DNA of 63,881 bases, the filler included, from Pelomyxa schiedti (Eukaryota > Protista > Evosea): NCBI GenBank assembly GCA_020536535.1. It is 9 parts of 9 records of this genome, joined end to end, with 100 filler letters (N's around TTAATTAATTAA, not from the genome) between each part and the next. Parts side by side here need not be neighbours in the genome. Positions count along the whole stretch, not along the records: positions 6,433 to 38,402 come from JAHLWZ010000995.1; 8 more parts are not named here. One strand, 5' to 3'. Of this stretch, positions 6,246-37,900 are shown piece after piece. Positions within the stretch are counted from its first letter, which is position 1, and each line of letters begins with the position of its first letter. The notes under the pieces are model-generated. The model was not told where the DNA came from. It was given only the letters and a program-made list of their open reading frames with translations, and made no database searches. Both the position numbers and the translations under genes were made by a program.

Positions 6246-6332
6246 TTCGCGCAGGAAAAAGTTGGTCCGGAACAGGTTGGCAGACCAACTTACATTTTTA
6301 AAAAAATAAAGCAAATGCCAATACACACAACT

Positions 6333-6432
6333 NNNNNNNNNNNNNNNNNNNNNNNNNNNNNNNNNNNNNNNNNNNNTTAATTAATTAANNNNNNNNNNNN
6401 NNNNNNNNNNNNNNNNNNNNNNNNNNNNNNNN
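6333..6432. other. Artificial contig linker (N-TTAATTAATTAA-N)
   Basis: Six-frame stop motif at 6377-6388 centred in Ns. The same cassette occurs 8 times in the window. Confidence 0.98.
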
Positions 6433-16500: not shown

Positions 16501-17959
16501 GGCTGATGCTGGCGATGCCAGGGCACTTTATTTTCTTGGCGTGTGCTATGGGATTGGCCACGGTGTTGACAAGGATGTTAGCAAAGCAGTCATGCTTTAC
16601 CAGCGGGCTGCCGACGCCGGGCACGCTAGCTCAATGCGCCGTCTTGGTGCCTGTTATGAGATTGGCGATGGCGTTGGCAAGGACATTCACAAGGCTGTGG
16701 CACTGTACCAGAGGGCTGCTGATGCTGGTGATGTCAAGGCAATAGGCCAGCTTGGTGTGTGTTATGGGAATGGCAACGGTGTTGACAAAGATGTTAGCAA
16801 AGCAGTCATGCTTTACCAGCGGGCTGCTGATGCTGGTGACACTGTGGCACTGTGTAACCTGGGTGTGTGTTATGAGAGTGGCAACGGTGTTGACAAGGAT
16901 GTGGGCAAAGCGCTCACACTGTACCAACAGGCTGCTAAGACCCGTCACCCCACGGCAATGCGCTGTCTTGGTGTGTGCTACGAGAAAGGACATGGTGTTG
17001 AAAAGGACATGAGCAAGGCTGTTTCACTGTACCAGGGGGCTGCTGATGCTGGTGATGCCAGGGCAATGTGCAACCTTGGTGCGTGTTATGAGAAAGGCAG
17101 GGGTGTTGACAAAGACAATCTCAAGGCTATCACGCTTTATCAGAGAGCCGCCGATGCCGGTTGTGCCACAGCATTATTCTGGCTTGGTCTCTGTTACGAC
17201 AGTGGTGATGGTGTTGACAAGGATCTGGCCAAGGCAGTCACACTGTACCAGAGGGCCACTGATGCCGGCCACGCCGCAGCAATTTGCTATCTTGGTGCCT
17301 GTTATGAGTTTGGCCACGGTGTTGACAGGGACATTCACAAGGCTGTGGCACTGTACCAGCAAGCTGCTGATGCTGGTGATGCCAAGGCAATGCGCAGTCT
17401 TGGTTCCTGTTATGAGATTGGCGATGGAGTGGACAAGGACATTCATAAGGCTGTGGCACTGTACCAGAGGGCTGCTGATGCTGGTGATGCGGGGGCAATG
17501 TGCCAGCTTGGTTCGTGTTATAAGCATGGCAACGGTGTTGACAAGGATGTGAGCAAAGCAGTCATTCTTTACCAGCGGGCTGCTGATGCTGGTGACCCTA
17601 TGGCACTGTGTAACCTTGGTGTGTGTTATGACAATGGCACTGGTGTTGATAAGGACATTCACAAGGCGGTGGAGCTGTACCAGAGGGCTGCTGATGCCGG
17701 CAGTGCCAAGGCAATGCTAAACCTTGGTCTGTGCTATGAGAATGGCGACGGTGTTGACAAGGACATTCACAACGCTACGGCACTGTTACAGAGAGCCGCT
17801 GATGCTGGTGACACCATGGCTATGTGTTGTCTTGGTGTGCGTTATGAGATTGGCAAAGGTGTGGACAAGGATGTGAGCAAAGCAGTCACGCTGTATCAGA
17901 GGGCTGCACGGCTGGGTAATCAGCGGGCTATTCGCCGACTAAAGGGACTCGGGCTATAA
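13600..17959 (+). CDS. Putatively myristoylated PINK1-like protein kinase + helical linker + 15 Sel1-like repeats
   Basis: N-terminus is MGNSNSS. Kinase motifs are IAHGCNGMVYEV, VLKVPFNY, HPNI, HFDIKLDN, IDLGC, GNPSHRAPEI and CDPEKR. The final exon carries 15 Sel1 repeats. Confidence 0.88.
16301..17920 (+). repeat. Tandem 108-nt coding repeats (15 Sel1 units) within one exon
   Basis: Recurring DNA motifs gttgacaaggac/gat and taccagagggctgctgatgctggtga at a 108-nt period. Confidence 0.92.
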
Positions 17960-17995: not shown

Positions 17996-20185
17996 CTAAG
18001 TCCTGTGGAAAACGGGGCGTTTGTGTGCCACTTTGGGAGGCACTTCTCTTCTGTACGGTTGGTCCACTGTGTAAACTGACTGTGGCATGGTGAGTTGGGG
18101 CCTTCCAGATGGTGTAAGTGTTGCTGGTTCTACTGGTGTGAAACAAGCACTTTCGGTTCCTGGTGTACTGTTGTCTCCCAGAGGTCCCAGGGCTGCACTG
18201 TGCACGTCTGATTCACTTTGTTCTTCTTCCTCAGTGTCGTACTCTTCAATTTCTTCTTCACTACTGGTTTCTTCAGGGTCAGGTTCCTCGCTCTCCCACT
18301 CGCTTCCACTCGAGTAAGAGTACCAGCACAGACCATCCTCGTCTTCTTCATCTGCATCTGGTGCCATTGCCAACATCCTCTCTGCGTGAATCCTGGCAAG
18401 AATTTCGTCACACCACTTGAGCCACCCTGAGCACACTGACCTGCAGTTCAACAAGTCGTCAATGGGGAGCAGGCACAGAATTGCTTCGAATATGTGTGGC
18501 GGGAGCCCAATGGTTATGATTTCTCGCTGTTGTTCGCGTTCGCGCCGGATGCATTCCTGCCATTGTATCTCGATTCCTGGAGCAAGTGGTGAGAGGTGGG
18601 CGAATGCAGAAACCAGCAGGTGTGATGTGACAAGAGAGCGAGGAGTGTACCGGCTCCAACCCTCTTCTCCCCAGAAAAAGCGCAGAGCTTCACACAGCTG
18701 GTTTCCAGAGAAATTTGGGTGCAATGGGTTTCCTGAGTGCTCTTGCTGTTGCTTCAGGCGCGAAAATTGCTGTTTCAGGGAGTCCCGCAGGTCGGCTGGA
18801 CCATTCTCGTGGATGAAGGTGATGAGGTTATCAATGACAGACCACTCTTTGGGGACGGCCTTGAATTTGGGTTCTTCTTTGGCGTTCTTTTTTGGTTTGG
18901 TCTTTTTCTTTGACTTTCTTTTGGTTGCCTTGGTGGTAGTGGTGCTGGTGGGCTCTGAATGTGCGATTGTTGCAGATGGCGGAGGAGTTGCTGCCTTTTC
19001 TGTGTTTGGAGCAGTGGTTGCGTTACTCTTTGGTGGATTTGTAGTTGTTTGTGGTGACTCTATTGCACAGGTTGGGACGGTGTCTGTGGGAGAGTGCATT
19101 GATGTTGGTTTTGTACTGCTACTAGGTGTTGTGGATTGAGTTGTAGGTTTTGGTTTATTCTTGGGAGTGGAAGCCTTTGCAGTTGGAGGAGTGGTTTTTG
19201 TTGGTAACTTACTCTTTGCAGCTTGCGGGAGGCTGCTTTTATTTGACACAGGAACCAACTCGATGAAATCGGAACCGCAAATAGGACAAACTTTGAGTTT
19301 TGAATCGGGGCTGGCTGAATTACCTTCACTCTGTGTACTTTTTGATGCTGAATCCGGTTGGAATATTTCCTGTGCCGCCGTACTCACGTTTTCTGTTGAT
19401 CCCGTTGTTGAAGGTGATGTCTTGTGACTACTTGATGGCTGGGGAGTGCTTGCCGAAACACTGTGGCTTGACAATCCCTCAGCTCCACTCTTCTTCCCCG
19501 CATTACCTACATTCTCACTGACTTCCACCCCACCAGAACCCTCTTCCTCCCCCACCACTCCCCCCACCACAAACACCTTTTCCCTATGATTACACATATA
19601 ACACACCATTACGAAGTTTGGCTCCTCGCCCCCCAGGCCCTTGCCGCCTTCGCCTCCTCCCGCCCCGCAGCCCCCTCTTCCCCCCCTCCCGATCCCGCTC
19701 CCGCTCCCCCTCCCCGCCCCACTCACCCTCACCCTCGCCCTCGCCGTGGCCGTGGCCGTGGCGCCCCCTCGGCCCCTGGCCTGCTCCACGTGCCTCACCA
19801 GCCCCGGGTCCACCTTGTCCCCCACGAACTCGAACCTCGCCACGTCCCCCAGCGCCACCTTCTTCCCGCCGCCGCGGGCCCCCCGGCGCCCCCCGCCTCC
19901 TCCCCCTCTGGCCCCGCGCTGCGAGGGAGCCGCAGGTGCCGCGGACGCGGCGGCGGTCGCGGCCGCCGCGAGCTGGGCGTCGATGCGGGCGCGGGCGCGG
20001 GCCTTGGCCCGGGCGTGGCGGCTCGAGGACGCCGAGAACGTGGCCGGCGTGGGGCCCGGCGGCAGCGGGTGCAGTTGCACGTCTTCGCATCTGGTGTCGT
20101 CATAGTCGTATCCTCCTTCTTCCTCGTGGCCGAGGTCTTCGGCGCCGCCACGAGCGCAGGCCGCCGTCAATTTCCGAGAGCGCAT
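17996..20185 (-). CDS. Intronless low-complexity protein with a split zinc ribbon and a C-terminal-half F-box
   Basis: One ORF from MRSRKLTAA. It contains VCYMCNHREKV...CPICGSDFIEL, the F-box LPPHIFEAILCLLPIDDLLNCRSVCSGW and an acidic tail. The upstream ATG in the ORF track overlaps the GH39 last exon. Confidence 0.75.
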   Translation of the reverse strand: MRSRKLTAACARGGAEDLGHEEEGGYDYDDTRCEDVQLHPLPPGPTPATFSASSSRHARAKARARARIDAQLAAAATAAASAAPAAPSQRGARGGGGGGRRGARGGGKKVALGDVARFEFVGDKVDPGLVRHVEQARGRGGATATATARARVRVSGAGRGSGSGIGRGGRGGCGAGGGEGGKGLGGEEPNFVMVCYMCNHREKVFVVGGVVGEEEGSGGVEVSENVGNAGKKSGAEGLSSHSVSASTPQPSSSHKTSPSTTGSTENVSTAAQEIFQPDSASKSTQSEGNSASPDSKLKVCPICGSDFIELVPVSNKSSLPQAAKSKLPTKTTPPTAKASTPKNKPKPTTQSTTPSSSTKPTSMHSPTDTVPTCAIESPQTTTNPPKSNATTAPNTEKAATPPPSATIAHSEPTSTTTTKATKRKSKKKTKPKKNAKEEPKFKAVPKEWSVIDNLITFIHENGPADLRDSLKQQFSRLKQQQEHSGNPLHPNFSGNQLCEALRFFWGEEGWSRYTPRSLVTSHLLVSAFAHLSPLAPGIEIQWQECIRREREQQREIITIGLPPHIFEAILCLLPIDDLLNCRSVCSGWLKWCDEILARIHAERMLAMAPDADEEDEDGLCWYSYSSGSEWESEEPDPEETSSEEEIEEYDTEEEEQSESDVHSAALGPLGDNSTPGTESACFTPVEPATLTPSGRPQLTMPQSVYTVDQPYRREVPPKVAHKRPVFHRT

Positions 20186-20307
20186 GTTTTGTTTTCGGTT
20201 TTTGATCGCGCGTACGGAAATTCTTAAAAACGAAAAGGGGTGTATGAAGAAGGAACACAACAAGGATTTGGTTGTGTGAGAATAAGTTTGGCTTGTGTTT
20301 GGGGGAC

Positions 20308-22532
20308 TTAGACGAGAGGGAGTGTGATGGAGGCAACTGCCCATGGGGTGAGAGTGAGCTTGATGGAAAGGGTGGAGGACTGGAGTGTTGGTGTGATGGA
20401 TGTGGTCTTCATCTGTGAAGCATCCATGAGGGTCTGCAGCTGGGCAGAGGTGGGGTACAGCGGTGATCCCATGGCAACCCATGTAGCATAAGGGTTGGCA
20501 TTGTTGTCATCTGTGAGAATTTGGAGGTGAGTGTGGAAGCAAATCGGATTGTAGTACTGTAAACAACTATTATTAGTTTGATAGGGGAATTTTACCTATT
20601 GTTTGGAGAATGCCTGTTGGTGCTGTGGTACCCTTGTACGCTGTGGGAGAATGAGTGTGATCATCAGTTAAAAAACCAGCACGTTACGCTCACATTTAAT
20701 GGTGATGCAAATCGACTTGGTGCCAAGTGTTTCAGTGGCATAATCAAAGTTGGTAGCGAGAATAACCAAGTGGGTAGAATTCTTTGTGGCGAGAACGTCA
20801 ACAGTCTCAGAGACACTGTACGAAAACAGATTAGAGATTTGAACGCAGCATTGAAGGAACGTACTTATCATAAGTCACATCGAATCTGCTGTCTCCAGTG
20901 GCATGAAGTAGCTGGAACGCGCGATAAGCAGGTTTGGGAATGCCGTAAATAGTCTGGACACCAAATCCTTGATGGAATGGCACGCTGTCAAGACCATTCT
21001 CCTCAAAGATATCTGAGATGGTACCAGAATTAAGAAGAAAAAGAGGGTCAGAGGAGTTAGGCACCAGTGAATGTCCACCAGGAGAGAACATCAACGAGAC
21101 CGGCAACTTCTGGAATTGTCTTCACAGCCATGGAAGCGGCATAAATATTGTCGTGTAGTGATTCGGCGAACAGCCCATCGTTGTACTCGGTGTATAGAAG
21201 TGGGTAGTCTCCAGCTAACTCCCTGGTTTGTTTAATAACTTGGAGTATTGTTAACTTAACAAGTAGAGAAGACTAAAAGAACGTACCGTTGTACATGCCC
21301 TCCCTATCTTGGTTGGCATTTGGGTCAGTTGGGTACTCATGAGTACTAATGAAGTCAAGGGGAACATTGTTTTCCTCCACAAATTCGATTGTTTCTGTGA
21401 TCCAACCAGATTGGCAAGTTGCAGGACCTCCAACTAAATTGCGTCCACTTAAGTTACACAACAAAAAGCAACAATAAAAGAACCTTTCAGGTTACTATTG
21501 ACGGACTTGAGTGCCAAAGCAGTGTGTTGATACAACTCAAAGTAGTCCGCCTGTGTTCCGAACCAGAAGCCACAATTTGGTTCGTTCCTAGAGGTATGAG
21601 AAAACAAAACTAGAAGTGCTGCGGTATACCAGACTTCAAAGTACCACTGTGATACTTCAGTAAGACCATATCTAAGACACAGGTGAGGAGAAGAATAAAC
21701 CAAACAAAAAAGTTGAGTACCTATCGATAAGGTGAGAAGCAAGTGCCTCAATAAGCTGATCCCATTCAGTGTAATTTTTTGGTGGAGTAATATTTCCCTA
21801 AGACACATTTAGTTTTGGGAAAAAAAGTTTTAAAATCAATGTACCTTGTAATGGAAAATAGTTTCAGTTCCACTGGCAAGATCTGTTTTTTTGGTTATTT
21901 AAAGAAAAAGTTCTATCGGAATGGTTACCTTCCGGCATAAAACTAAGTTCAATGAGAGGTCTCATTCCCAAACTTAGAAGAAAGTCGAAAATTGAATCAA
22001 TGTTGAAAAAGCTGTAGTTTGGAGAGCCACTGTCAGGGTATCTCATATAGACACTCATGTCGTCATCCAAAATGCCGTGGAACCGAACCATTTGGGTTCC
22101 CTTTAACACTAAATTTAGACAGAACCCAACACAGTACGAGAGAATACCAGTTCTCGGTTTGTAACAGTGAGTTGATCTCTCCTGTAAATACAATTTAAGG
22201 GAAATAAAATAAAAAAGAGAATACAAGCAAGACTCACCAATCCTGCCTAAGGGCAGTCGTACCATGGCACGATCCCATACATCGTTCCCAGTAGTGATCC
22301 TATATATAGAAATTTCGTAAGTTAATACGAGCCAAGTTACGAGGTACGTGACTTGTTGGGGAAAAAACCCAGCGCTTCAACTGTTCCAAAAAGGGAAAAA
22401 ACAAAGAAAAAAACACACCCAAGTGGTAGTTGTACCAGCCAAGTCCATTACGAAGCAATCTTGTGCCCGGACAAGCGACACAGTGGCAACAACACCAACA
22501 AACAACAATAGCCCAACAACCCCACGTGCCAT
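20308..22532 (-). CDS. Secreted glycoside hydrolase family 39 (beta-xylosidase / alpha-L-iduronidase-like)
   Basis: Signal peptide MARGVVGLLLFVGVVATVSLVRA, then HYWERCMGSCHG, VRFHGILDDDM, RPLIELSFMP, YFEVW-EPN, VGGPAT, DFISTHEYP, YTEYN, GIPKPAYRAFQLL and ANPYATWVAMGSP. Confidence 0.9.
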
Positions 22533-23838: not shown

Positions 23839-25443
23839 TTAAGACAAGAGACACTTCACAGTTTCGAAAAGTTGATCTGCTGCGTCACACGAGTTTTCCA
23901 CGCACGTGACACCAACTTCAGAGACCGGCCCCAATGTGCTGAGAATGTGGAAGAATGCCCCAGTCTTTCTGTCTCCTTGCGGGAACAGCAGGCCTCTCCG
24001 GCTGAGCTCCTCCACGACCGAGTCGGCGGTTCCCTGCGCTCTGAGCTCCTCGCGGCAGTGCATGCTGTCAGTTGACACGTAGCACTTGTGAATCGGAGGC
24101 GTGTGTAGTGGTGATGGAGCGGGTGGGGCGAGGAGGAAGCCGGTTGTCTCGTCGTAGGTGCTGTTTGTGAGGTGGGACACGCAAATCATTGGGTACGTGG
24201 TGGCGCACTTGCGGGCGTTTATCTCTATGGCGTAGAGGCTCCACTTGTTGGTGTCGGAGCCAAGCACGGCGACTGTGTCGACGCTGAAGAACCCGCGGAC
24301 GCCTTTCAGTGATAGCTCTCTTCCGACTCTCTCGCCGTAGTCGTGTAACTCGGCAAAGTAGTCGCTGTTGGCTGGAAAGCAGCATCCAATGTATTTGCCC
24401 TTGTCCCCAGAAATCTTCTGCTCATGAGTGGAAACGATTTGCACTCTTCCAGAAGGGTGTATTGTGGCTTGCACACTGGGGCTGGTCTTGTCGCGGTCAG
24501 TTTCAATGAATTCCTCCACAATGGCACCGGCTCGCGCCAGTTCACTTGTCCATGCCTCCCAGTGTTCTACGGCAAGTGGTAAGCTTTCTTGAATAGCCTT
24601 ATGCAGTTCGGGGGTTTCCATCGTCTCATAATCTGAGGGTAAAGGAATTACTACATTCCCTCTTCCTGATATTCCGTCATCAATTTTTACAATGACCCTC
24701 TTTGGGTTCACCTGAATATAGGAATTACAATTTTGCTCCCCCCGTACTCTCATGCACAGAGCTAAAATTTCCCGTGCGAGTTCCGATGGGTTCATGCACA
24801 GCCTTGAGCTTCCTCGAGCGTGGGGGAGTCCGAGCCAGGCAAATATTTCTCTGGATCCGCTCTTTGTTCCCCAGTCTCTACTAGCAGTTCCTTGGCAACA
24901 CAGCGGTATACCCAAAGCTTTCGCCAAAGATATATCCAAGTCAGTCTGTGCATAAGTTTCCAGCACACAATAGTCTGCGATCGGCGGAGCGCTCACTTGT
25001 TCCAGAGTGGATGTCAACTGCCTCAGAAGAAGAGGGCTTTCCACAACTCTTCTTGTGAGAACCTTGAGGGGTTCTCCAGTGACAGCAGGCGGTGACACCA
25101 ATATTACCCTTTCAAATGGGTCAGAAAAAGTGCATCCAGAGGAGACTACAAGATCTCGATAGTAGGACAATATGTCACTAGAGAGAGGGAAACTGCTCAG
25201 AAACACCATTCGCCTTTCCGGATCTGCTAGAGTCAACAACAGCTCTCCAACAAGAGCGCGCTCGTCGTAGAAATGACGAATATTAGACACTTCACGCATC
25301 TCCTCGCACACTGTGAGGCAAAAAGCCACCAAAACTACGTTACGACTTCTCGCACTCTCTTCACCAAGATCCAGATCTGGCACAGGCCTCCCGGTGCTTG
25401 CTAGACAATCGCGCAGCTGTATCATCGCTATTTTGTTTTGCAA
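23839..25443 (-). CDS. Intronless ATP-grasp peptide ligase, PGM1-related (pre-ATP-grasp + ATP-grasp + PGM1_C-like)
   Basis: 534-aa ORF with FYDERAL, WGTKSGSREIF, VIVKIDDGISGRGN, IVEEFIE, SPSVQ, STHEQ, YIGCCFPA, AIEINARKCATTYP, YVSTDS and TGAFFHILSTL, colinear with the bacterial PGM1-family consensus as I recall it. Confidence 0.85.
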   Translation of the reverse strand: MQNKIAMIQLRDCLASTGRPVPDLDLGEESARSRNVVLVAFCLTVCEEMREVSNIRHFYDERALVGELLLTLADPERRMVFLSSFPLSSDILSYYRDLVVSSGCTFSDPFERVILVSPPAVTGEPLKVLTRRVVESPLLLRQLTSTLEQVSAPPIADYCVLETYAQTDLDISLAKALGIPLCCQGTASRDWGTKSGSREIFAWLGLPHARGSSRLCMNPSELAREILALCMRVRGEQNCNSYIQVNPKRVIVKIDDGISGRGNVVIPLPSDYETMETPELHKAIQESLPLAVEHWEAWTSELARAGAIVEEFIETDRDKTSPSVQATIHPSGRVQIVSTHEQKISGDKGKYIGCCFPANSDYFAELHDYGERVGRELSLKGVRGFFSVDTVAVLGSDTNKWSLYAIEINARKCATTYPMICVSHLTNSTYDETTGFLLAPPAPSPLHTPPIHKCYVSTDSMHCREELRAQGTADSVVEELSRRGLLFPQGDRKTGAFFHILSTLGPVSEVGVTCVENSCDAADQLFETVKCLLS

Positions 25444-25686: not shown

Positions 25687-28498
25687 TCAACCAAGGAAGG
25701 AGAGCACACCGTAAATCTCGAAGCCGGATATCACGAGGTAGTTTTTGCCGTGTGAGTTGTGTCCAGTCATTGTCACCCGAAACATTCTGAAGGACGGTGA
25801 GGATGAAGAAGGCGCTGGTGGGACATCCCAGGACCCAACATAATATGCTCCATTGATTGTCACGTCATTCGTGTGTCTCGTGAGGGTCGTCCAAGTCGTG
25901 CCGTCGTTTGATCCCCTCAGCTCCCAGTTCCGAACGTAATGGCCGCTCTGGCTATGCCTGATTGAGTACTTTGATGGCTTCACTGAACCTCCGCAGGGCC
26001 TCAGGTCCACCTGCCACCAACTGCTTCCCAGGCCCTGGTCGTTGGTGCAGTTGTAGTCCCTGCAGTCGCGGTCGAGCACGCGGTGCGGGGCGCCGTTGTT
26101 GTCGCTGGACCACGAGGCTATGACGAGGCCGGAAGTGTGGGGGTTGACGTAATTGTGGGTGTGGTTGTCGGGGTTGTGCCGCGGGTCGGGCGTGGTCCCA
26201 AGCCACCAAATGATGCCTTGTTGGTCCCAATTGTTGCTGAATGTGAATTCACGTGTAAACACTGTGTGTGTTGGGAAATTGGTTCAGAGTTAGTGATGGC
26301 CAAACATACAGTTCTCTGAAACAGTAATACAAGAGTTGATGGATTGGCGGTATACATACTGTTTGGTGTTGATAGAGCCACGACGGGGGAATTCCTTCCA
26401 TATATTCCATCTGACTCAGCCCTCACACTCACCAGGTATGTGGTTCCCCTCGTTAGGCCACCAACTTTGATTATGGGGTCACTGCCACACTTGAACTGTT
26501 GACACTGCTGCTGTTGAAGTGCCTTGGATACAAACACTGTGTATCCCGTAACTGTGATTCTTGATTGTGTACTGTTGATGTTATTTGCGGTTTGCACTGT
26601 TGGAGGAGGGTCCCATGAGAGACTGAGGGATGTTGATGTTGCTTGAGACAGTTTAGGTTCCCCCGGTGCACCGATCGCTTCTTCTATTTTGTGGTTGGAG
26701 TTTGTTTGGTGATGAATAAAAGTGAGCCAGACACACCAGGAGGGAGAATGACACCCAGCGAGGATATTGCTTCACAGCACGCAGTTTTGTCAAGAATTGA
26801 AAAAACGGCACCACTTTGACATGGTTGGAGGTTTCGCGAATCTGAAAGAGCCTTTTCCAGAGTCTTTTTATTTGCAATTGAGGTAAGTTTGGTTGCTTCG
26901 AGGGAAAGTTGTGACTGACCTCAAGAGTATCTGAGGAACGTTTGTGAGCACTGATAACGGAAATGTTTGAGGAAGACTGCATCGCAGACAGAGAATTGGA
27001 AGAGGTCCTTTCAATATTTTCCAAAATCGTGGAAAACATTGATTTCTGCCTGCTCAGGGAATCAACTAGAAACCCCCCAAACGTGTGAGTTAGAGGACGA
27101 GGGTTGTGTGGTGTGCCGTTGGTGATTATTATTATTTATTGATTATGATTATTTTTCCCCAAGTACATTGTTGGTTCCACACACACCTGTTTGTGCACAA
27201 ATGGATGATGAACTTTTCTTCAGGAACTCAATTCTGTTTCTCAACAGAACCTGCAGTTCTGCTCCAACCTTGTCCACTTCCGCTTGAAACTCCGCATGCT
27301 TCTGTGAATATAGAAAGAAGAGAGAGGGTGAGATCACGACAGCGCGAAGAGGACAACTTGATCGACAGAAGCAATCAGTTGGTCCAATTGTTGCACTGCC
27401 ACCTCCACGTTCTTCTTTTGGTCAATGATCCGCTTCGAAAGCGATGGCAGCTCCAACTTGCTTGACATACTTTGTTTGGAAAGTTCTATAAATTTGTGCC
27501 CCTTTTTTCTTGGTTAACGGTTGATCGAGTCAGGGAAAATAAGGACGTGGGAAAAAAAAAGGAGAAACCTGGTGTGAGGTAGCAGCACACAAAGAGCACA
27601 GAAGATCCGCGCAATCCGCGCAATACAATTCAATTTCCTTCTTTGGGTGCTTCGGGCAGTTGCCTGTGTGACTGTTGTGAGGAATAAAATGTCCCTAGGA
27701 ATTGGGAATTGATTGGTATTTGAACTTACTGTTTATCTCGGGAACCGCTTGCTCTAAGGGGAGCTTCAGATGAGATGCAGCACTGCGCCTCTTGTGAGCT
27801 TCTTCCCAACATCTGTCACACAATGATCCACATGCAGTGCAATGTGCGGTTGCTTTTTTATCACAGTCAACGCATGAAACTGCTCCACCTGTTCTCGTGA
27901 GTGCATAGCTTTTCTTAGTTTTGAAATCAACAATAAGAAAGGGGTGGTGGTGTGAGCATAACAATAAAAAACCCAACAGACCTGTTTTTGCCTGTTCCCT
28001 CTGCTGCAGTAGCTCAGCGAGTTGAGTGTTTGGTTCCAATTCTTTCATGCACACTGTCACTGTTGTCACTGCAGAGCACTTTGGGCACTTCACTCCAACG
28101 GTTCCATGATCCTGCCACAGTCCACAGGCAAAGCCCACAAAAAAAATATGAGAATGTGAGAAACCACACCCGCGGTGCAGAAATACACACGGGGTTGTAC
28201 GACGACGCCGAGTCACAAGCATCACCACTTGTGGCACCCGTTGGTGCTTTTGACGTCGCACCCGCGCCACAGGCGTAGCCGCCATCACAATTATGGCTCA
28301 GAGGCACGGCAAGAGCATACTGTTTGGCCACGCAACTGACAACACACCCTCGGCACATGCTGTCCCCGCACTACAATATGACAAGGCAAAAACAAGGAAT
28401 ATGAGTACCTGGAAGAGAACTGGGTCATTGAACACTCCCAGGCAAAACGGGCAGCACAGACTCGTGGCCCCGGAAGCAACCGATGTTGACCCTGCCAT
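25687..28498 (-). CDS. TRIM-like protein: RING, two B-boxes, coiled coil, FN3, HECTD1-type SUN / galactose-binding-like domain (paralog 1)
   Basis: CPFCLGVFNDPVLFQ-CGDSMCRGC...CPKC, CVDCDKKATAHCTAC, CPKHPKKEIELYCADC, FN3 SLSLSWDPP...TTYLVSVRA and C-terminal WDQQGIIWWLGT...WWQVDL...RNWELRGSNDG...ISGFEIYG. Confidence 0.85.
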
Positions 28499-29318
28499 TT
28501 GTTGTAATGAGACGAAAAGGAAGTCGACTTCCACTTTTCCTTTTTAAGCAATTTGTGGGTTCCAATTTTTTCTTTCGTACTTGAAAATACGAATCCTCTA
28601 AGCTGAAAACCCTGACACTGTTGTCTGAACCCTCGGATCAAATTGAGTGGGTAACCCAGGTGCTTGCGGTGTCTGAGAAAGTCTGGTGACAGAGCGATCG
28701 GCGCTCACAACGAAGGAAAGGTCCTGCTCATTCCGGTATACAACAGGGACTTCCTCGACCGACCAGTCCTCCCCCGTTCTGCAACGCCTACAAAGCATCG
28801 GGGTGATTTCACGGTCGGCTAAGTCTTCATTAGAAATCATTGGACTTACCGTCTCATTCTGAATCTCAACAAAACAGATTACTGTCTTGCAACAACTGCA
28901 CCAAACCTTGGAGGGTTTTGTAGAGAATAAATTGGTGTGTGTGTTACCGTGGATTGGTTCTTTGGGTTGTGAGTATTTGTGGAGTTGTTTCCACTACAAT
29001 CTCCTGTCCCTGGAAGATGAAAAAAATTCCAAAAGTAAAACTATTTTTAGTTTGTGTTTGCAGAGATTGGTTTCCTACAATTGGTGGACTTCCACACACA
29101 CTAGTTTGGGAGTGTTGAGGTGTGGAAATTATGTAGCCAGAAGGTTGTGTTGTCTTTGCTGGTTGGGGTTAGGGTATCCTGAATAAAACATCATCAATTT
29201 CCGTTATGTGGATCCCATCCCAGAGGAAATTGCAGGAACTCCAAGGAAACAACCGACCGCAAAACTCCAAAAGAAGAGCTGGAATTCGTTTTAACCTGGT
29301 TATTTTATTGAGCCACAT

Positions 29319-32300
29319 ATGTACAAATGGGAGCGCATCCAGATGGGCGTGGGAGAATCACTGGAGACAATACGTTGTGCACTAGAGCACCCTAAATGTG
29401 CCTGTAAACGTCTTGAATTAAGTGGCATGCCCCAACTCCTCTGACCAACTGACTCTCACTCACAACAAACAAGGCAACAAATTTGGTGACGAGGGTGCAG
29501 CGATCATTGCACGAGCACTTTCGTCCAACAACTCACTTGTGTCCCTGGATCTTTCCAGTATGTCGTTATCGTGTGCCCACTCATTCCTCCTTTCCTCCCA
29601 ACTCCTCTGACCAACTGACTCTCACACAAACAACCAAGGCAACAAAATTGGTGACGAGGGTGCAACGATCATTGCGCGAGCACTTTCATCCAACAACTCA
29701 CTTGTGTCCCTGGATCTTTCCAGTATGTCGTTACTGTGTGCCCATTCATGCCTCCTTTCCACCCAACTCCTCTTACCAACTGACTCACTCACAAACAACC
29801 AAGGCAACAAAATTGGTGACGAAGGTGCAGCCAGTATTGCACAAGCCTTTTCATCCAACAACTCACTTTTGTCCCTCAATTTGGAGTGTATGTCGTTGGC
29901 GCGTCTACTAATCATGCCTCCTTTCCTCCCAACTCAGATCAACTGACACACTTACAAACAAACAAGACAACAACATTGGTGATCAGGGTGCAGCAGGATT
30001 TGCACATACACTTTCATCCAACAAGTCACTTATGTCCCTTGATCTTGGCAGTATGTCGTTGGCGTGTGCCAATCATGCCTCCCAATCGGATAAACTGACA
30101 TTCACTCAAACAAACAAACAAGACAACAACATTGCTGCTGAGGGTGCAACGAACATTGCCCAGGCACTTTCATCCAACAAGTCACTTATGTCCCTAGATC
30201 TTTCTCGTATGTCTTTGTAGTGTGCCCACTCATTTCTCCTTTCCTCCCAACTCCTTGAACCAACTGACACACACTCACAAAAAAAAAGACAACAAAATTG
30301 GTGATCAGGGTGCAGCCAGTATTGCACGGACAATTTCATCCAACAGGTCACTTGTGTACCTCGATCTTGGCAGTATGTCGTTGGCACGTTCCAACCCGTT
30401 CCTCCTTTCCACCCAGCTCCTTGGACCAACTGACTCTCACTCACAAACAAACAAGGCAACAAAATTGGTATTGGGGGTGCAGCCAGTATTGCATGGGCCC
30501 TTTCATCCAACAACTCACTTGTGTCCCTCGATCTTGGCAGTATGTCGTTGATGTGTCTGCCAATCACACCCCCTTTCCTCCCAACTCCTCTGACCAACTG
30601 ACAAACAAGACAACAATATTGGTGCTGAGGGTGCAGCCGGTATTGTACAGGCACTTTCATCGAACAATTCACTTGTATCACTGGATCTTTACAGTATGTG
30701 ACTAACGTGTACCACCCGTTCCTCCTTTCCTCTCAACTTCACTCACAAACAAAAAAGGCAACAATATTGGTGATGAGGGTGGGGTGCACATTGGACGGGC
30801 ACTTTCATCCAACAACTCACTTGTGTCCCTGATTCTTTGTGGTACGTGTGCCCACTGGTTCCTCAATTCCTCCCAACTTTTTGGGCCACTGACACTCACA
30901 AACAAGTCAACAATATTGGTGATGAAGGTGCAGCGAGCATTGCACAGGCACTTTCAGCCAACAACTCACTTGTGTCCCTGGATCTTTCCAGTATGTCGTT
31001 GGCGTGTGACCCATTCCTCCTTTCTCTGCCAACTCCTCTGACCAACTGCCACACTCTCACAAACAACCAAGTGAACAAAATTGGTGATCAGGGTACAGCC
31101 GGTATTGCACGGGCCCTTTTATCCAACAATTCACTTTTGTACCTTAATCTTACAAGTATGTCGTGGTCACGTTATCATTCATTCCTCCTTTCCTCCCAAC
31201 TCCTCTGACCAACTGACACTCGCTCACAAACAACCAAGGCAACAAAATTGGTGATGAAGGTGCAGCCAGTATTGCACGGGCCCTTTTATCCAACAATTCA
31301 CTTTTGTACCTCCATCTTAGCAGTATGTCGTGGTCACGTCATCATTCATTCCTCCTTTCCCCCTCTGACCAACTGACTCTCACTCACAAACAAACAAGGC
31401 AACAAAATTGGTATTGGGGGTGCAGCAGGATTTGCACATACACTTTCATCCAACAAGTCACTTATGTCCCTTGATCTTGGCAGTATGTCGTTGGCGTGTG
31501 CCAATCATGCCTCCCAATCGGATAAACTGACATTCACTCAAACAAACAAACAAGACAACAACATTGCTGCTGAGGGTGCAACGAACATTGCCCAGGCACT
31601 TTCATCCAACAAGTCACTTATGTCCCTAGATCTTTCTCGTATGTCTTTGTAGTGTGCCCACTCATTTCTCCTTTCCTCCCAACTCCTTGAACCAACTGAC
31701 ACACACTCACAAAAAAAAAGACAACAAAATTGGTGATCAGGGTGCAGCCAGTATTGCACGGACAATTTCATCCAACAGGTCACTTGTGTACCTCGATCTT
31801 GGCAGTATGTCGTTGGCACGTTCCAACCCGTTCCTCCTTTCCACCCAGCTCCTTGGACCAACTGACTCTCACTCACAAACAAACAAGGCAACAAAATTGG
31901 TATTGGGGGTGCAGCCAGTATTGCATGGGCCCTTTTATCCAACAATTCACTTTTGTACCTCCATCTTAGCAGTATGTCGTGGTCACGTCATCATTCATTC
32001 CTCCTTTCCCCCTCTTACCAACTGACACTCGCTCACAAACAACCAAGGCAACAAAATTGGTGATCAGGGTGCAGTGATCATTGCACAAGCACTTCCATCC
32101 AACAACTCACTTTTATCTCTGCGTCTTGTCAGTATGTCGTCATAAGCCATTCATTTTTCCTTTCCTCCTAACTGACACACACAAGACAACGAAATGGATG
32201 AGAAGGGTAAAGCAAGCATTTCATGGACACCATCCAACAAGTCACGTGTACCCGGGTGTTTCTACAGTATGTAAGTTCTCATTTCCTCCTAGTCCAATTG

Positions 32301-34804
32301 ACAGGCAAACAAAGGGACCGAAAAAGAGTCACAGTCTACACCACAATTTATGTGGTTTTCCTGGTTAGTGCGTGCTACTTCTCCAATTGCTTCTATCTTG
32401 GTCTTGTTACGGGCAGAGTACAGCCATGCCTTTGTGGGTAAGACACAATACCAAATGATTTACCTTGGAATGGGTTTGCATATCATACGACTGGACAACC
32501 CAAGGATGCACAATCCGTTGGTGGATCTCTTTGCCATTCCCATTGAGATCCCAGACTCATGTTTCTCACCTCAAACACCATTTCTGAGCACTAATTCTCT
32601 CGAAGGTTCATATCCCAGTCCGAAGTCCATTGCCATTGGTGTGTAGTTTACCCCAACTGGGTAAAAAAATAAACAGGAATACCACACAGGCAAAAAATAC
32701 TCTGAGATTAATTCATGTGACCCTCCTCCTTCATCTTTGAGCCTAGTATTATCTGATCTCACCCATAAGTTGGCTTCCATGTTAAGGGACGAATTCCCAC
32801 AGCAATTGCAGACAGTTCCACAATCCACCCAGTCATTCCATGATACATTGATACCAGCGGCACTTCCTCCTATTTGTGCAACGAAAGTGATAACATCTGG
32901 GCCACTCCTGGTCACAAGAACTACCAACAACCAAGCTAGCACAAGAAGAAGTAATATTACTGCAGAAGAAGAAGGAGTGTTTTTGGAGTCTGTCAATGAA
33001 GTCTCCGTGTTGATCAAAACAATAAAACTGGCACTGGTGCAGGTATTTCAAATCTTTTCTCTTTGTTTAATCATGTGTCTTTGCAGGAAAAAGAACTTCA
33101 GTTGGTTTGTCTTCATTTATCTTTTTTTTCCAAAACACGCTCCCCAACGCTACACCTTCTTACCTTCTGCAGTATTATCAAAAGTTCACTTCTTTCATCG
33201 ATTTCAGCTATATGAGAGCCATTGAGATGGGTGACATCGACATCCCTTCTGCAAAGGTTTGAAGCCTTTCATTGGTCACTTTTTTCACTCCAACACAAAA
33301 AAAAAAGATTCTTGGAGTTGGATGCAACGGAACCACGAGCAGTGTGATGCTAAAACCAACAAACGACTGGCATATTCCAAGGAAGATGATTGAGCAAGGT
33401 GTGGCATTGAAGATGATGTTCAACTTGGAGTTTCGGCCAGGCAGTGTTGGAACCACAGAGCATCAGAGGAACCGATTTGACAAAGAGTACTACTCACTCA
33501 TTCAAAACACGCACTGGGGTGTGGCCAACATAATCAGTTTTTTTCGTAGTTACACACAGGTCTCCCCCAACAGAAACATCACCAACGTGTTTGCTGACCA
33601 CCATTCAAAAAAAGGAAGAGTTGATCCCAAGAGACAGAAAAATGTGCTTGGTTTCATCAGAGACAGGGACCCCAGTGGATCCAAGTCCCCACAACCACCT
33701 AAACTGTGTGTCAATATATGACAGAACGACATTCATCACACAGGAACTTGGATCAACCACCCTTGAAAAGACCATGCAACAGTTGATGTTACTAACAGCA
33801 TCATCATTACCACAGCAGCAGAATCGCACCGTTCCAGTTGCAACCAAAACTGCAACTGCAACCACTATCCTTCTTCCTCTTGGAATGACTAAAACTTTGG
33901 AGAACACCTTCCAGCTGCTTTCAACAGTGGACCATCTCAATAACTCATGCGGATTGTTCCACCTGGACATCAAGTCCGACAACATCCTCTTCCTTGAGAG
34001 ACCCGGCTTCACAGGCCAGTTCACTGTTCTGTGTGACTTTGGAACCTCAGTGAGCATCAACCCTTCTTCAGTAAGTGGTGTCACACCCGGGATGCTAGTA
34101 CTGGGTCTCAATGAGGTGCCGGAAGGAAACATTCTCAACAGGGCACCAGAAGCACTGAGACCAGTTTCACTGCAACCGAGGTTTTACAAACTCCCCTCCC
34201 GTCTTTTTTTTCACACTGACCTTCACACACCCACATGCTTGTCAGGTCAAGCACATTCAATGTGTCCAAGACCGACCTGTGGGCTGTTGGGTGTGTTGTG
34301 TGGCAGATGTGCTTCGGGACCACGCCGTTTACGAGCGAGGAAGCGATCACATCCAAGCCACTTATGATCCCGGCTGGTCTCCTCCGCGATTGCCCGTGCC
34401 TGTTCCATCTCCTCAAGCGGGTGTTTGACAGGAAGCCCGCAACCAGGCCCTCTGCCGGCCTCGCCTCCATCTTCGTCGGTTCGCACCTCTTCCTTACCGA
34501 TATCAACGACCTCATAACCCGCATCAAATCCACTGCCTCCGCTTCCGCTTCCAGTTCCCCATCCGCATCCGCATCCTCATCCATATCCGGCAATGCATCG
34601 TCAGGTGTGGAGTCTGTCATTGAACAGAGGTTGTGTGCTCTTAAATCACTGACGTGTGCTGACATTGACGCAATGATGGAACAGCAGAAGCACCTGGATT
34701 GGAAGGAAAGGACGATTCCAGTGAGGTTCTTCCTGCAGATGGTTTTCCTCAATCAGGCAACCCCTGCCCTCATCCTCCTTGCCCTCAACACCTTTTACCC
34801 TTAA
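29319..34804 (+). CDS. LRR-kinase: 17 single-exon RNI-type LRRs (plus 1 degenerate), linker, PINK1-like kinase
   Basis: The ATG exon is MYKWERIQ...LEHPKCACKRLEL, followed by 84-nt phase-1 LRR exons. Manual splicing stays in frame through RQTKGPKK, EYSHAFVG, GKKYSEINSC, EKELQL and YYQKFTSF into ILGVGCNG, ALKMMFN, FHLDIKSDNIL, LCDFG, GNILNRAPE, KTDLWAVG and RPSA. Confidence 0.75.
29474..32266 (+). repeat. Tandem exon+intron array (period ~150-167 bp), one LRR per 84-nt exon
   Basis: Exons checked at 29474-29557, 29639-29722 and 32048-32131 are each 84 nt. The introns are homologous too (gtatgtcgt...ttcctcctttcc...ccaactgac...acaaacaag). Confidence 0.95.
31418..31935 (+). repeat. Apparently exact 518-bp copy of 29986-30503 inside the LRR array
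   Basis: Offset 1432. The ORF-track translations 30032-30220 and 31464-31652 are identical, and the introns are identical by eye. Confidence 0.85.
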
Positions 34805-35003
34805 CTGAGGCAATCCCCGTGAACCACAAGCGGACTCGTAAGCCAAGACACCGTGCTGGACCGCCGACTCAGACCACCATCGCCCGGCTACGTGTACAAC
34901 CTTCCCAACAGAAACGGGGCTACGATTACACCATAAATTACGCCGCAGGAAAAGAGTTTAGTTTGAATGATGTGGGGTTTGTGTAACTGTACATTGTGTG
35001 GTG

Positions 35004-37737
35004 TCAAAGGGTGCTGGGTGTGACCAAGCCGTAAATCTCGAAGCCGTAAATAATGAGCACCCAGACGCCACTTGAGTTGGCACAGGTCATTGCCACAGAA
35101 AACATGCTGAAGGAGGATGTTGGAGAGGCCTGTGGGATGTCCCAGGACCCAACGCAAAACGCTGAATTGAGTGTCTGGTCATTCGTGTGCCTCGTGAGTG
35201 TAGTCCACGTTATTCCGTTGTTTGATCCCCTCAGCTCCCAGCTCCTGAGGAACCCGTCATGTTGCATGTCGTGCTTGATGGAGTACTTTGATGGGCACAC
35301 TGACAGGCCGCATGGCCTCAGGTCCACCTGCCACCACGTGTTGTGTTCCGGAGTTGTGAAGTTGCAGCACACGCCATACTCGTCCCTGCCGAGTGCAATA
35401 TACGGGGCACCATTGCCGGCACGGGACCATGAAGCGATGACGAGGCCTGAATCGTGGGGGTTGACATATTTGGGGGTGTGAGTGTCAGGGTGGTGCTTTG
35501 GATCGGGAGTGGTTCCCAGCCACCACATGATTCCTTGTTGGTCCCAGTTGCTGCTGAATGTGAACTCAAGTGGCCCTATTTGGTTTTTTGGATTTGGTTT
35601 GTTTTGGTGAAGGTTAGTGATGGTTGCCAGTAAATGGGCACCGATGTATCTTTCTAATGGGAGGGATGGAAACGCACAGTTTGGCGTTAGGAGCGCTACT
35701 GCGGGAGAGTTCCTTCCGTGGACTCCATTTGATTGTGCCCTCACACTCACCATGTATGTGGTTCCCTTCATCAGGCCTCCTACTCGGATTCTGGGCTCAG
35801 GGCCGCACTCGATTTGTTGACACTGCTGCTGTTGAAGTGCCTTGGATACAAACACGGTGTATCCTGACACTGTGCATTTTATTAGTTGTGGGCTGTTGCC
35901 GGTGGTGGATTTTAGAGGAGGGGGATCCCATGAGAGACTGAGGGACGCTGATGTTGCTTGGCATATCTTAGGTTGCCCCGGAATCCCAATCGCTTCTTCT
36001 GTTGGTTGTGGATGTGACACATTGAGATTGACTTGTTTGGTGATGGTGAATATCACACACCAGGAGGGAGGATGACACCCAGTGATGATATAGCTTCACA
36101 GTACGCTGTTTTATCAAGCAATGAAAAAGCGTCACCGCTGTCACATGGTTCGAGGTTGTGTGAATCTGAAAGAACCTTCTCCATAGTCTTTTGGTTTTTG
36201 TGTGAGTACAGTTGTGTTGAGTTATTGGATCTGACCTGAAGAACATCTGAGGAACGTTTGTGAGCACTGACAACAGAAATGTTTGAGGAAGACTGCATTG
36301 CAGACAGTGAACTGGAAGAGCTTCCCTCCAGAGTTTCCGAAATGGCAGAGAAAATTGACTTCTGCCGGTTCAGAGCCTCAACTGAAAACAAGGCACTTAA
36401 TGGAATGCAGATGTGGGCTATTTCAGACCTGTTCTTGAACAAATTGTAGCCGAACATGTCTTCAGGAAATCGATTCTGTTTCTCAAGAGTGCTTCCAGTT
36501 CTGCTCCGAATTTATCTACATCTGCCTGAAGTTTTGCGTGTTTCTGAAAAAGTTGAGTTTGAGACAACCAAAGTACATGAAAGGAGGGTGACAACCTGTT
36601 CGACAGAGGATATCGCTTGGTTTAACTGTTGAACTGCCACATCAACTTTCGTTTTCTGTTCAAGGCATCTCTTGGAAATCATCGGTAACTCTGGCTTACT
36701 TAACCCAGTTTGTTCAGACATTTCAATCAATTTGTGCCCCTATTTTATTGGTTAGGTTGTTTTCTACGGCGTATCATGCTGGAAGAAACCTGGTGGAAAC
36801 TGACAGCACACACAGAACACAGCAGATCGGTGCAGTTCACGCAATATAACTTGATTTCCTTCTTGGGGTGCTTTGGGCAGTTGCCTATGTGTTGAGAGAA
36901 AATAAGTCAATCGGGAGAAAAGGCGTCAATTAATTAGCACTTAAACTTACTGGGTACTTCAGGAGCCGCTTGCTCCAAGGGGAGCTTCACATGAGATGCA
37001 GCACTGCGCCTCTTGTGAGCTTCTTCCCAACATCTGTCACACAATGAGCCACATGCAGAGCAGTGTGCAGTTGCTTTCTGGTCACAGTCAATGCACGCAA
37101 CTGACCCTGTTAATGCAGTGAGTGATATAGGTTATTTCTTTCTTTTTCGTCCACTGGCACAACGAACCTGTTCTTGCCTGTTCCCTCTGCTGCAGTAGCT
37201 CAGCGAGTTGAGTGTTTGGCTCCAATTCTTTCATGCACTGTGACACTGTCACTGTTGTCACCGCAGAGCACTTTGGGCACTTCACTCCAACGGTTCCACG
37301 AACCTAGAGTCCGACACACACAACAAGCAGCAGAAATGAAATCTAAGCCAACCAACCCACATAAGAGAGGTGACGTAATACACACAGGATCGTAGGACAA
37401 CAACGTGGTGTGTACAGAGGCACCATCAACGGAGCCTGTGGCAGTAGCAGTTGGAGTTCTCGATGCGGACGTCGACGTGGCGCCCACGGTGTTGCTGGCC
37501 AGGGGCAGCGAGAGGGCACACTGATTTGCGACGCAGCTTACGAGGCATTTGCGGCAAATGCTGTCTCCGCACTATGGTATTGTATTGGGTGGGGGTAGCT
37601 CCTTTATGAAGATAACGACATACCTGGAGGGAGACAGGGTGCTGGAACACTCCCAGGCAAAATGGGCAGCACAGGTTTGGTAAAGTGGTCCCTGTTGCAA
37701 CTGCTGCCGCCACACTTGCGTTCGTAGATGCCGCCAT
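35004..37737 (-). CDS. TRIM-like protein: RING, B-boxes, coiled coil, FN3, HECTD1-type SUN-like domain (paralog 2)
   Basis: MAASTNAS...CPFCLGVFQHPVSLQ-CGDSICRKC...CPKC. It has the same exon layout as 25687-28498 and a C-terminal WDQQGIMWWLGT...IYGFEIYG. Confidence 0.85.
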
Positions 37738-37900
37738 CACGGCGGTTCTGGTCTTTTTCCTGGATTCTAGGGGCGGTGGTTGAGAGAATGTGAATTCCTC
37801 TGTTGGATACCTCCAAAGTAACACAAGTACACTTCATGCAGTACTTGTGTTTGCATATGACTGCATATCTGGATCAGTGGGCAGTGATTTTTTTCCCTAT

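Follow-up and report, generated by a model that had tools for sequence, protein, structure and literature searches.

A one-repeat-per-exon leucine-rich repeat array in a probable cytosolic LRR-kinase gene of Pelomyxa schiedti

Introduction

Genes that place each leucine-rich repeat (LRR) in its own frame-preserving exon have been described in animals and in brown algae. In human NLRs the exons for LRRs of the ribonuclease-inhibitor (RI) type are strictly modular and preserve the reading frame; those of NLRP genes measure 171 bp, those of NOD/NLRC genes hold a single 28-residue LRR each, the exon borders fall at a constant point of the beta-sheet, and exon 5 of NLRP3 is subject to regulated skipping (Hoss et al. 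2019, PMC6642158). The ROCO and LRR-kinase genes of Ectocarpus and other brown algae encode one LRR per 72-nt exon and have undergone exon shuffling (Zambounis et al. 2012, PMC3341825; Teng et al. 2024, PMC11378527), with positive selection on the concave face and alternative transcripts also reported (PMC3341825, PMC11378527). In duplicated genes, 'islands of divergence' can be held by selection despite gene conversion (PMC3924837, a review; PMC3728101, an example). The present study concerns an LRR exon array with a comparable layout in Pelomyxa schiedti (Archamoebae, Amoebozoa; assembly GCA_020536535.1), situated at positions 29474-32266 of a 63,881-nt stretch, filler included, that joins nine parts of nine records and is hereafter called the window; positions 6433-38402 derive from record JAHLWZ010000995.1. 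A first-pass annotation based on the sequence had suggested that the array is a combinatorial system generating receptor ectodomain variants. A literature search for LRR genes of Pelomyxa returned no paper. Here we propose that the array is probably the LRR domain of an ordinary, inherited and intact cytosolic LRR-kinase gene, most probably in P. schiedti.

Results

An array of symmetric LRR exons

The array comprises 17 plus-strand exons of exactly 84 nt, each encoding one 28-residue LRR. Exons were called from GTA(T/C)GT donors spaced at 148-167 nt, with 84 nt taken 5' of each donor. Exons 1 to 12 lie at 29474-29557, 29639-29722, 29804-29887, 29967-30050, 30123-30206, 30289-30372, 30456-30539, 30610-30693, 30758-30841, 30907-30990, 31072-31155 and 31239-31322, exons 13 to 16 form a second block described below, and exon 17 lies at 32048-32131. 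All are preceded by AG and followed by GTATGT, with a single GTACGT at exon 9. The 17 exons translate without stops in frame offset 2, and the split codon has one base at the exon end and two at the start of the next exon, so all introns are in phase 1 and the exons are symmetric. An 18th, degenerate LRR unit of 81 nt, also phase 1-1, follows at 32186-32266; AG is present before 32186 and absent before 32183, which is 84 nt back from 32266. The locus thus has the arrangement by which modular LRR-exon genes are recognised, one repeat per constant-length exon with the same phase on both sides, here with 17 exons of 84 nt and a final one of 81 nt. The first-pass annotation had listed the 17 phase-1 exons with homologous introns and had noted that any of them could be skipped, duplicated or swapped in frame; both statements hold on measurement, since all exons are phase 1-1, and the 81-nt unit is an addition to them.

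The introns of the array are 64-83 nt long and mutually homologous, with 79.5% identity on the alignment, equal to that of the exons. They share a common layout, with GTATGTCGTT at the start, C and T predominating in the middle, CCAACTGAC as the presumed branch site, and a CA-rich end (…ACAAACAAG). Tandem Repeats Finder reports a period of 167 with 16.8 copies (score 2326), and a pattern made of the exon core plus donor gave 18 matches versus none expected (100 shuffles). Exons 1 and 2 are 95% identical. GC skew is strongly negative over 29433-32432 (-0.22 to -0.29) because the introns are C-rich and almost devoid of G. Relic or reverse-strand LRR exons were not found within the array, nor were extra LRR cassettes near it, save for an unrelated intact LRR gene 19 kb away. 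Matches were also absent from JGI metagenome contigs scanned with the exon-core-plus-donor pattern, from a protein search with the open reading frame (ORF) running through exon 10, the following intron and exon 11, and from an Rfam scan of the whole piece. There is no doubt that the array exists and comprises at least 13 distinct units.

Translated, the 17 repeats read N-K/N-I-G-D-E-G-A-x-x-I-A-x-A-L-S-S-N-x-S-L-x-S-L-D-L-x-x. We tested for the RI type using the 28-29-residue pattern LxxLxLxx(N/C)xLxxxGxxxLxxxLxxxxx together with a match to Pfam LRR_6 (PF13516). The 28-residue consensus N-x-I-G-D-E-G-A-x-x-I-A-x-A-L-x-S-N-x-S-L-x-x-L-x-L-x-x fits this pattern, and LRR_6 is matched by 10 of the 17 single-repeat peptides (best E = 3.8e-4). 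A profile of the repeats retrieved designed RI-consensus LRR proteins and 'ribonuclease inhibitor-like' proteins from PDB (E = 1e-15 to 4e-14). Judged by sequence, the repeats are of the RI class, which typifies intracellular proteins, among them RNH1, RanGAP and NLRs.

A predicted LRR-kinase gene

A gene model was built by homology to two P. schiedti paralogs, P0002 (1110 aa) and P0003 (975 aa), which are both named 'Protein NLRC3' at NCBI and consist of an N-terminal LRR_6 region (E = 4e-51 and 7e-37, respectively), a linker without Pfam match and a Pkinase domain. The resulting model has 27 exons separated by introns of 44-83 nt and encodes 1241 residues with no internal stop, in the order N-terminal cap (N-cap), LRRs, conserved linker and divergent non-RD protein kinase. 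Its linker (FMWFSWL…, DLFAIPIEI, SIAIGKKY…), 18-nt micro-exon and kinase align colinearly with those of P0002 and P0003. Over 3.7 kb every exon keeps the frame free of stops, and the GC donor of intron 1 is the only non-canonical splice site. That the LRR and kinase parts would constitute one gene, as the first-pass annotation had supposed, rests on this homology and on the open frame.

The first coding exon (29319-29424) contains the start codon, with an in-frame stop eight codons upstream, and encodes a 35-residue N-cap (…CALEHPKCACKRLELSG) directly ahead of the LRRs; it ends in phase 1 and is homologous to the N-termini of P0003 and of the proteins encoded at two further loci, L003 and L004. 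Downstream of the array, the degenerate exon 18 is the counterpart of the degenerate last repeat of P0002. It is followed by the conserved linker exon (32315-32560; …FMWFSWL…DLFAIPIEI…), colinear with P0002, P0003 and P0125 and without Pfam match, a small linker exon (32606-32638; …SYPSPKSIAI G) homologous to the SCPSRTSIAFG exon of P0002, a pre-kinase exon (32690-33042) aligning to the start of another paralog, P0001, and the 18-nt micro-exon (33087-33104; EKELQL), which is kept as EKELQM/EKEIQM exons at the P0003 and P0002 loci (L001 and L002). The kinase is encoded by an exon at 33173-33256 (YYQKFTSFIDF…SAK), an N-lobe exon (33308-33559) with the glycine loop GVGCNG and the lysine in ALKMMF, a catalytic exon (33615-34180) with HLDIKSDN (non-RD), DFG and APE, and a last exon (34246-34804) comprising the C-lobe and a C-terminal helical tail and ending in the stop codon.

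Alternative paths between exon 18 and the kinase were considered. An unguided enumeration of splice paths gave 1200 solutions, none of them singled out. A 36-nt intron at 32641-32676 was replaced by a 51-nt intron at 32639-32689, which fits the G-K-x-Y junction of the paralogs. A tail-anchored or transmembrane reading after the array, in which acceptor 32305 leads into a basic stretch, a 25-residue hydrophobic segment and an immediate stop, was rejected, as the frame from acceptor 32315 is colinear with the FLWFTW linker of P0002, P0003 and P0125.

The glycine loop, the VAIK lysine, HLD, DFG and APE are all present in the kinase. Its catalytic exon has only 30 relatives at E ≤ 0.001 among 1.8 billion representatives, and the top four are all P. 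schiedti proteins of the same assembly (55-82% identity). The nearest solved kinases are of the NAK family and PINK1 (E ~1e-8), not LRRK or TKL, and on sequence comparison the kinase is classed as an orphan. The linker of about 250 residues has no Pfam match. NACHT and NB-ARC were not found, Pfam giving only LRR families and Pkinase in P0002 and P0003, and the Pelomyxa genes are therefore not NLRs, despite the 'NLRC3' name of the paralogs. Likewise, Ras/ROC or COR has no Pfam match in P0002 and P0003, nor does the linker match any Pfam family, which indicates that they are not ROCO or LRRK genes. The 5' neighbour genes of the array gene are on the opposite strand.

The predicted N-terminus (MYKWERIQMGVGESLE…) is not hydrophobic and gives no indication of a signal peptide. 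In a search for a transmembrane helix, the best 19-residue Kyte-Doolittle windows scored 1.66 and 1.47, neither of them convincing; the former is the extreme C-terminal tail, broken by N and Q, and the latter lies in the linker and includes R. These features suggest a cytosolic LRR-kinase, which would be neither an ectodomain nor a receptor kinase of RLK or Toll-like topology.

The same exon design across the paralogs

Exons of the paralogs were mapped with an exact spliced mapper, tblastn being too insensitive for 28-residue exons. L001 (P0003) has about ten LRR exons of 79-84 nt and, in addition, a last repeat fused to the linker exon, L002 (P0002) about 14 of 82-87 nt, and L004 (P0125) nine of 75-99 nt, seven of which are 84 nt long. 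Exons within these three loci are 64-76% identical, and their introns (40-90 nt) are barely more similar than shuffled sequences (0.60-0.64 versus 0.50-0.56). A minus-strand LRR gene in the window (10318-9424) has seven LRR exons of 81-87 nt with introns that are unrelated by inspection. L003, located 5' of P0001, has nine LRR exons of 84 nt. The LRR exons are in phase 1 in all six mapped P. schiedti LRR genes, with 7-18 repeats per gene. Homologous introns occur in only two arrays, that of the window (79.5% identical) and that of L003 (98.7%); a recent amplification or homogenisation of these two arrays is indicated, because only there are the introns still homologous.

The L003 array has a period of 161 with 89% matches, carries the same intron consensus as the window and is unannotated; the existence of another such array, which the first-pass annotation had proposed to search for, is thereby established. 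Starting at about 30900 and continuing through array and kinase, the window can be aligned to L003 at 73%. Trees of exons and trees of introns both place the L003 units in a single clade within those of the window. The L003 region (5925-8000 of JAHLWZ010000617.1) comprises an N-cap exon, nine 84-nt LRR exons and the linker 5' of Pelo_7843 (KAH3760338), in frame. The KAH3760338 model also lacks part of the kinase N-lobe.

Other members combine the repeats with a different domain. L004 (501-5861 of JAHLWZ010000644.1, 'NOD3 protein') has the N-cap, 84-nt phase-1 LRR exons and the FLWFTW linker, followed by Peptidase_C14 (metacaspase) instead of a kinase, and P0038 (1785 aa) contains LRR_6 and Peptidase_C14. 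The minus-strand LRR gene of the window is of RI type and diverged, with introns of 41-61 nt; one of its donors is GC, at the position structurally equivalent to that of the GC donor in the array gene.

Selection on the repeats

The most variable residues of the repeat are 27, 10, 13, 25 and 22. Among the 13 non-redundant window exons, the ratio of nonsynonymous to synonymous substitution rates (dN/dS) was 0.56 for all codons, 0.38 at scaffold positions, 1.10 at the beta-strand x positions (22, 23, 25 and 27) and 0.27 at exposed helix and loop positions. In the L003 array, the ratio of nonsynonymous to synonymous differences (pN/pS) was 1.21 at beta-strand x positions and 0.30 at the remaining positions. 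Parsimony over 21 units gave 34 nonsynonymous (N) to 7 synonymous (S) changes at beta-strand x positions versus 54 to 35 elsewhere (Fisher p = 0.015), with positions 25 (10:0) and 27 (16:2) standing out. A concentration of variation at exposed positions had been noted on first reading and is borne out by these counts, with exposed helix positions varying too. The per-site test proposed at the same time gave a divided answer: N changes are enriched at beta-strand x positions, but no site is significantly above neutrality in the parsimony analysis of the 21 units, and the concave-face dN/dS of ~1.1-1.2 is not significantly greater than 1. The concave-face variation is consistent with either diversifying selection or merely absent constraint.

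Observations weighing against an ordinary intact gene

Several observations count against the interpretation of the array as part of an ordinary, intact and simply duplicated LRR-kinase gene. In L003, exons are 90.3% and introns 98.7% identical (Fisher p = 5e-4); 19 of 84 exon columns are variable, about six of them synonymous, versus 3 of 77 intron columns, and the 3' 60 nt of the introns are invariant. When the L003 array is compared with that of the window, identity is 76% in exons (62% at third positions) and 86% in introns on aligned columns, whereas outside the arrays the same gene pair shows 83% in exons (85, 89 and 71% by codon position) and 64% in introns. This better preservation of introns than exons is not predicted by simple recent duplication. 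One of two options is gene conversion homogenising whole units with selection keeping the exon variants apart, and the other is constraint on uniform, strong splice signals in short introns.

Transcript evidence is derived from two tiny single-cell Smart-seq2 runs with a depth of 2-10. A contig over exons 7-10 joins 30693 (exon 8) to 30758 exactly, removing the predicted 64-nt GT..AG intron, but only one of its three introns is spliced and the two neighbouring introns are kept, including that downstream of exon 7. As this contig starts inside intron 6, behind Nextera/template-switch adapter sequence, it looks like partly processed pre-mRNA. The GC-AG intron 1 (29425-29473) is retained in the sole RNA contig over it, so that constitutive splicing across the entire array is an assumption. 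RNA coverage is absent from 31000-33530, and no RNA connects the LRRs of this gene with its kinase. Within the kinase, a second RNA contig splices 34180 to 34246 as predicted, and a loose RNA end fits a splice from 33559 to 33615. The closest paralog, P0001 at L003, is annotated at NCBI as kinase-only. Finally, DNA depth in the bin holding the mosaic junction of exon 16 is 3.3 and 12.7 versus 24-94 in the single-copy flank, so the array may differ between nuclei or cells or be partly artefactual.

The second block and the reliability of the assembly

The last of these points concerns a second copy (31381-31971, plus strand) of the block carrying exons 4-7 (first copy 29949-30539), which holds exons 13-16 with their introns at 93-100% identity. 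Exons 14 (31555-31638) and 15 (31721-31804) have the same sequence as exons 5 and 6, respectively. Exons 13 (31399-31482) and 16 (31888-31971) are mosaic: the 5' third of exon 13 resembles exon 7 and the rest exon 4, and the 5' part of exon 16 resembles exon 7 and its 3' third exon 12, with the switch between parents in both cases falling within 9 nt of identity. These mosaic exons are the sole direct hint of gene conversion in the array.

The P. schiedti project used seven micromanipulated cells, whole-genome amplification, Illumina and Nanopore sequencing, and SPAdes in single-cell mode (PMC8887013). The runs that hold the window, whole-genome DNA and single-cell Smart-seq2 RNA, belong to one study, in agreement with this project. 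The count of 17 depends on repeat resolution because the assembly is a hybrid SPAdes assembly of whole-genome-amplified DNA. All along the array, contigs of the public short-read DNA runs are interrupted, and 21-32 of them can be placed at two positions; DNA depth is not usable as copy number, given that such contigs were placed once and the material was amplified. One DNA run has no contig over 31364-31560, and a DNA contig departs from the array at 30195 into a different LRR unit; together with the low depth of the second block, this could reflect further arrays, structural variants or amplification chimeras.

The most serious alternative, to which we assign a lesser but appreciable chance, is accordingly that the array is real while its second block and the count of 17 are products of amplification chimeras or of the assembler. 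The nature of the assembly, the pervasive contig breaks and the low junction depths, which are inconsistent between the two DNA runs, all point in this direction. However, the mosaic junctions have just 9 nt in common, much less than the k-mers of 21-121 that were used, which makes simple mis-joining of the graph unlikely; one DNA run covers both junctions, and L003 independently has a nine-unit array, so high-identity arrays are real in this genome. Three origins are conceivable for the second block, namely segmental duplication of recent date, a difference between nuclei or cells, and an artefact of amplification or assembly, and we regard the number 17 and the order of exons 13-16 as provisional.

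Alternative splicing, gene integrity and recombination

An unlikely explanation is that the symmetric exons are skipped in combinations, one gene thereby yielding many LRR-kinase isoforms. Any subset of the 18 exons would remain in frame, the uniform and unusually conserved introns could serve splice regulation, and modular LRR exons have precedents in NLRP3 (PMC6642158) and the brown-algal ROCO genes (PMC11378527). Against this, no exon-skipping junction was reported in the two RNA runs, in which the power was very low at their depth, and the sole junction inside the array joins adjacent exons. The introns are short (64-83 nt) with near-identical strong donors and acceptors, and the RNA contigs show retention. 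Genomes with short introns favour intron definition, and with it intron retention over exon skipping. The RNA fold of one intron-exon-intron segment was no more stable than shuffles (z = +0.88), with no sign of docking/selector pairing.

It is still less likely that the gene is decaying or split, with LRR and kinase parts no longer forming one functional gene and a kinase-only product. The GC donor of intron 1 and its retention in RNA, the distribution of RNA mainly over the kinase (33531-34900) and the kinase-only model of P0001 would fit such a state. They are outweighed by 27 exons that are open and in frame with otherwise canonical splice sites, by the dN/dS values of 0.56 overall and 0.38 at scaffold positions, and by the minus-strand LRR gene, in which a second GC donor occupies the equivalent structural position. 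Furthermore, the L003 array and linker run in frame into the annotated start of P0001, so the public model looks N-terminally truncated. The array gene is probably functional.

A comparably small chance attaches to the possibility that the two arrays with homogenised introns are kept as recombination substrates, such that unequal exchange or conversion within and between nuclei renews exon number and order while selection preserves the differences of the concave face. Candidate footprints of this process would be the stronger conservation of introns than of exons, the mosaic exons and the sub-stoichiometric depth at junctions. If true, it would represent a fast-turnover repertoire of intracellular LRR sensors with kinase or metacaspase effectors, possibly tied to prokaryotic endosymbionts.

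Somatic or inter-nuclear recombination in this multinucleate amoeba, giving nuclei or cells that differ in exon number and order, is very unlikely: the mosaic exons of the near-identical second block, its low junction depth and missing contig, the contig leaving at 30195 and the homogeneous introns, which would supply the substrate, are compatible with it, but the DNA is amplified material of seven pooled cells (PMC8887013) and amplification yields microhomology chimeras and uneven depth, the depth figures are weak as identical segments were placed at one of two positions, the loose end at 30195 may stem from another paralogous array, and neither a cassette library nor an incomplete germline gene nor any other sign of a dedicated rearrangement system was seen.

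Neighbouring genes

The LRR-kinase gene is flanked by duplicated TRIM-like genes (25687-28641 and 35004-37824, both minus strand) with B-box, fibronectin type III, F5/8 type C/discoidin-like and possibly RING domains. Tandem paralogs encoding a kinase with C-terminal Sel1 repeats (Pfam Sel1, 1e-148) are located at 13600-17959 and 6631-8704 on the plus strand; 14 Sel1 units of 108 nt (16377-17907) lie within a single exon, unlike the one-repeat-per-exon LRR genes. On the minus strand, an 828-residue ORF (17996-20482) has an F-box domain and a Gly/Arg/Pro-rich low-complexity core of 65% GC (19433-20432), and a single-exon 534-residue ORF (23839-25443) has an IQCH-like ATP-grasp domain (E = 1e-16).

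Discussion

The interpretation that we favour, an ordinary, inherited and intact cytosolic LRR-kinase gene, retains much of the first-pass annotation. The union of array and kinase agrees with the stop-free model and its colinearity with P0002 and P0003 (LRR_6 and Pkinase), and the brown-algal LRR-ROCO precedent that it invoked is real (PMC3341825, PMC11378527). The proposed ectodomain and receptor topology is not supported, given the RI-type repeats, the non-hydrophobic N-terminus and the lack of a convincing membrane-spanning 19-residue window. Nor is the proposed variant-generating system: no skipping junction was seen, in RNA much too sparse to exclude one, there is no sign of somatic rearrangement, and the concave-face dN/dS is close to neutrality. 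A combinatorial diversification system is thus not demonstrated; what shows is evolutionary turnover of repeat number between paralogs.

We suggest the following scenario for the gene and its relatives. The one-repeat-per-exon, phase-1 design would be old and would make in-frame gain and loss of repeats cheap. In the window gene and at L003, the unit of exon plus intron may have multiplied recently through unequal crossing-over or gene conversion between neighbouring units, with each array expanding, contracting and homogenising independently. Over evolution, this could have given rise to paralogs with repeat numbers between 7 and 18, whose differences fall chiefly on positions 23, 25, 27 and 28 of the concave face, where a ligand is presumably bound. 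The protein may act as an intracellular sensor, its LRR solenoid recognising a ligand or partner and regulating the non-RD kinase at the C-terminus; in the sister genes the same N-cap/LRR/linker cassette is fused to a metacaspase. All 17 exons are most likely constitutively spliced by intron definition.

The array provides a clean natural example of exon-level tandem duplication altering LRR number, and its conservation of introns over exons can be used to study gene conversion versus diversity-preserving selection. The N-cap/RI-LRR/linker cassette joined to an orphan non-RD kinase or a metacaspase would represent NLR-like sensors without NACHT. At least one public gene model is corrected, as KAH3760338 appears to lack its LRR half. 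On present evidence, the locus does not represent a new way of generating receptor diversity.

Lamprey VLR and Dscam resemble the array only in the general idea of modular LRR (or Ig) cassettes. Unlike VLR genes, the array gene is complete, open and in frame as inherited, with no flanking cassette banks. It differs from Dscam in that docking/selector pairing was not seen (one folded segment), the introns are C-rich and nearly without G, and the thin RNA contains no variant junctions. A closer parallel is concerted evolution (PMC3924837, PMC3728101), in that the units cluster by locus and the non-coding parts are homogenised while putative binding positions stay different; the units of the array are, however, single exons within one gene rather than whole genes.

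The brown-algal genes, which have been put forward as immune candidates, share with the array one LRR per symmetric exon, repeat numbers that vary between paralogs, concave-face variation and cytosolic proteins in which the LRRs precede a signalling domain. Among the Ectocarpus-type traits, a variable repeat number, 7-18 between paralogs, was found in Pelomyxa; N:S is enriched at beta-strand x positions (p = 0.015), with no site above the neutral rate. The two differ in that the brown-algal exons are 72 nt long and encode 24-residue plant-like LRRs, as opposed to 84 nt and the RI type, and in the presence of ROC-COR, which the array gene lacks. Inactivated or reverse-strand LRR exons lie inside introns in Ectocarpus and were not found in the array, and positive selection and alternative transcripts are reported only from the algae.

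The likeness to NOD1, NOD2, NLRC3 and NLRC5 extends to 28-residue RI-type LRRs, each in a short frame-preserving exon with its border at the end of the beta-strand, and the LRRs of animal NLRC3 are 38-46% identical to the LRR region of the window. In contrast to NLRs, the array gene has no NACHT/NB-ARC, CARD or PYD, its LRRs are N-terminal, and its C-terminus is a kinase, or a metacaspase in sister genes. In addition, the LRR exons of NLRs are old and diverged, whereas the exons and introns of the array are near-identical tandem copies. The Pelomyxa genes belong with the modular LRR-exon genes, whose exon design is already known from animal NLRs and brown algae and is here extended to the Archamoebae.

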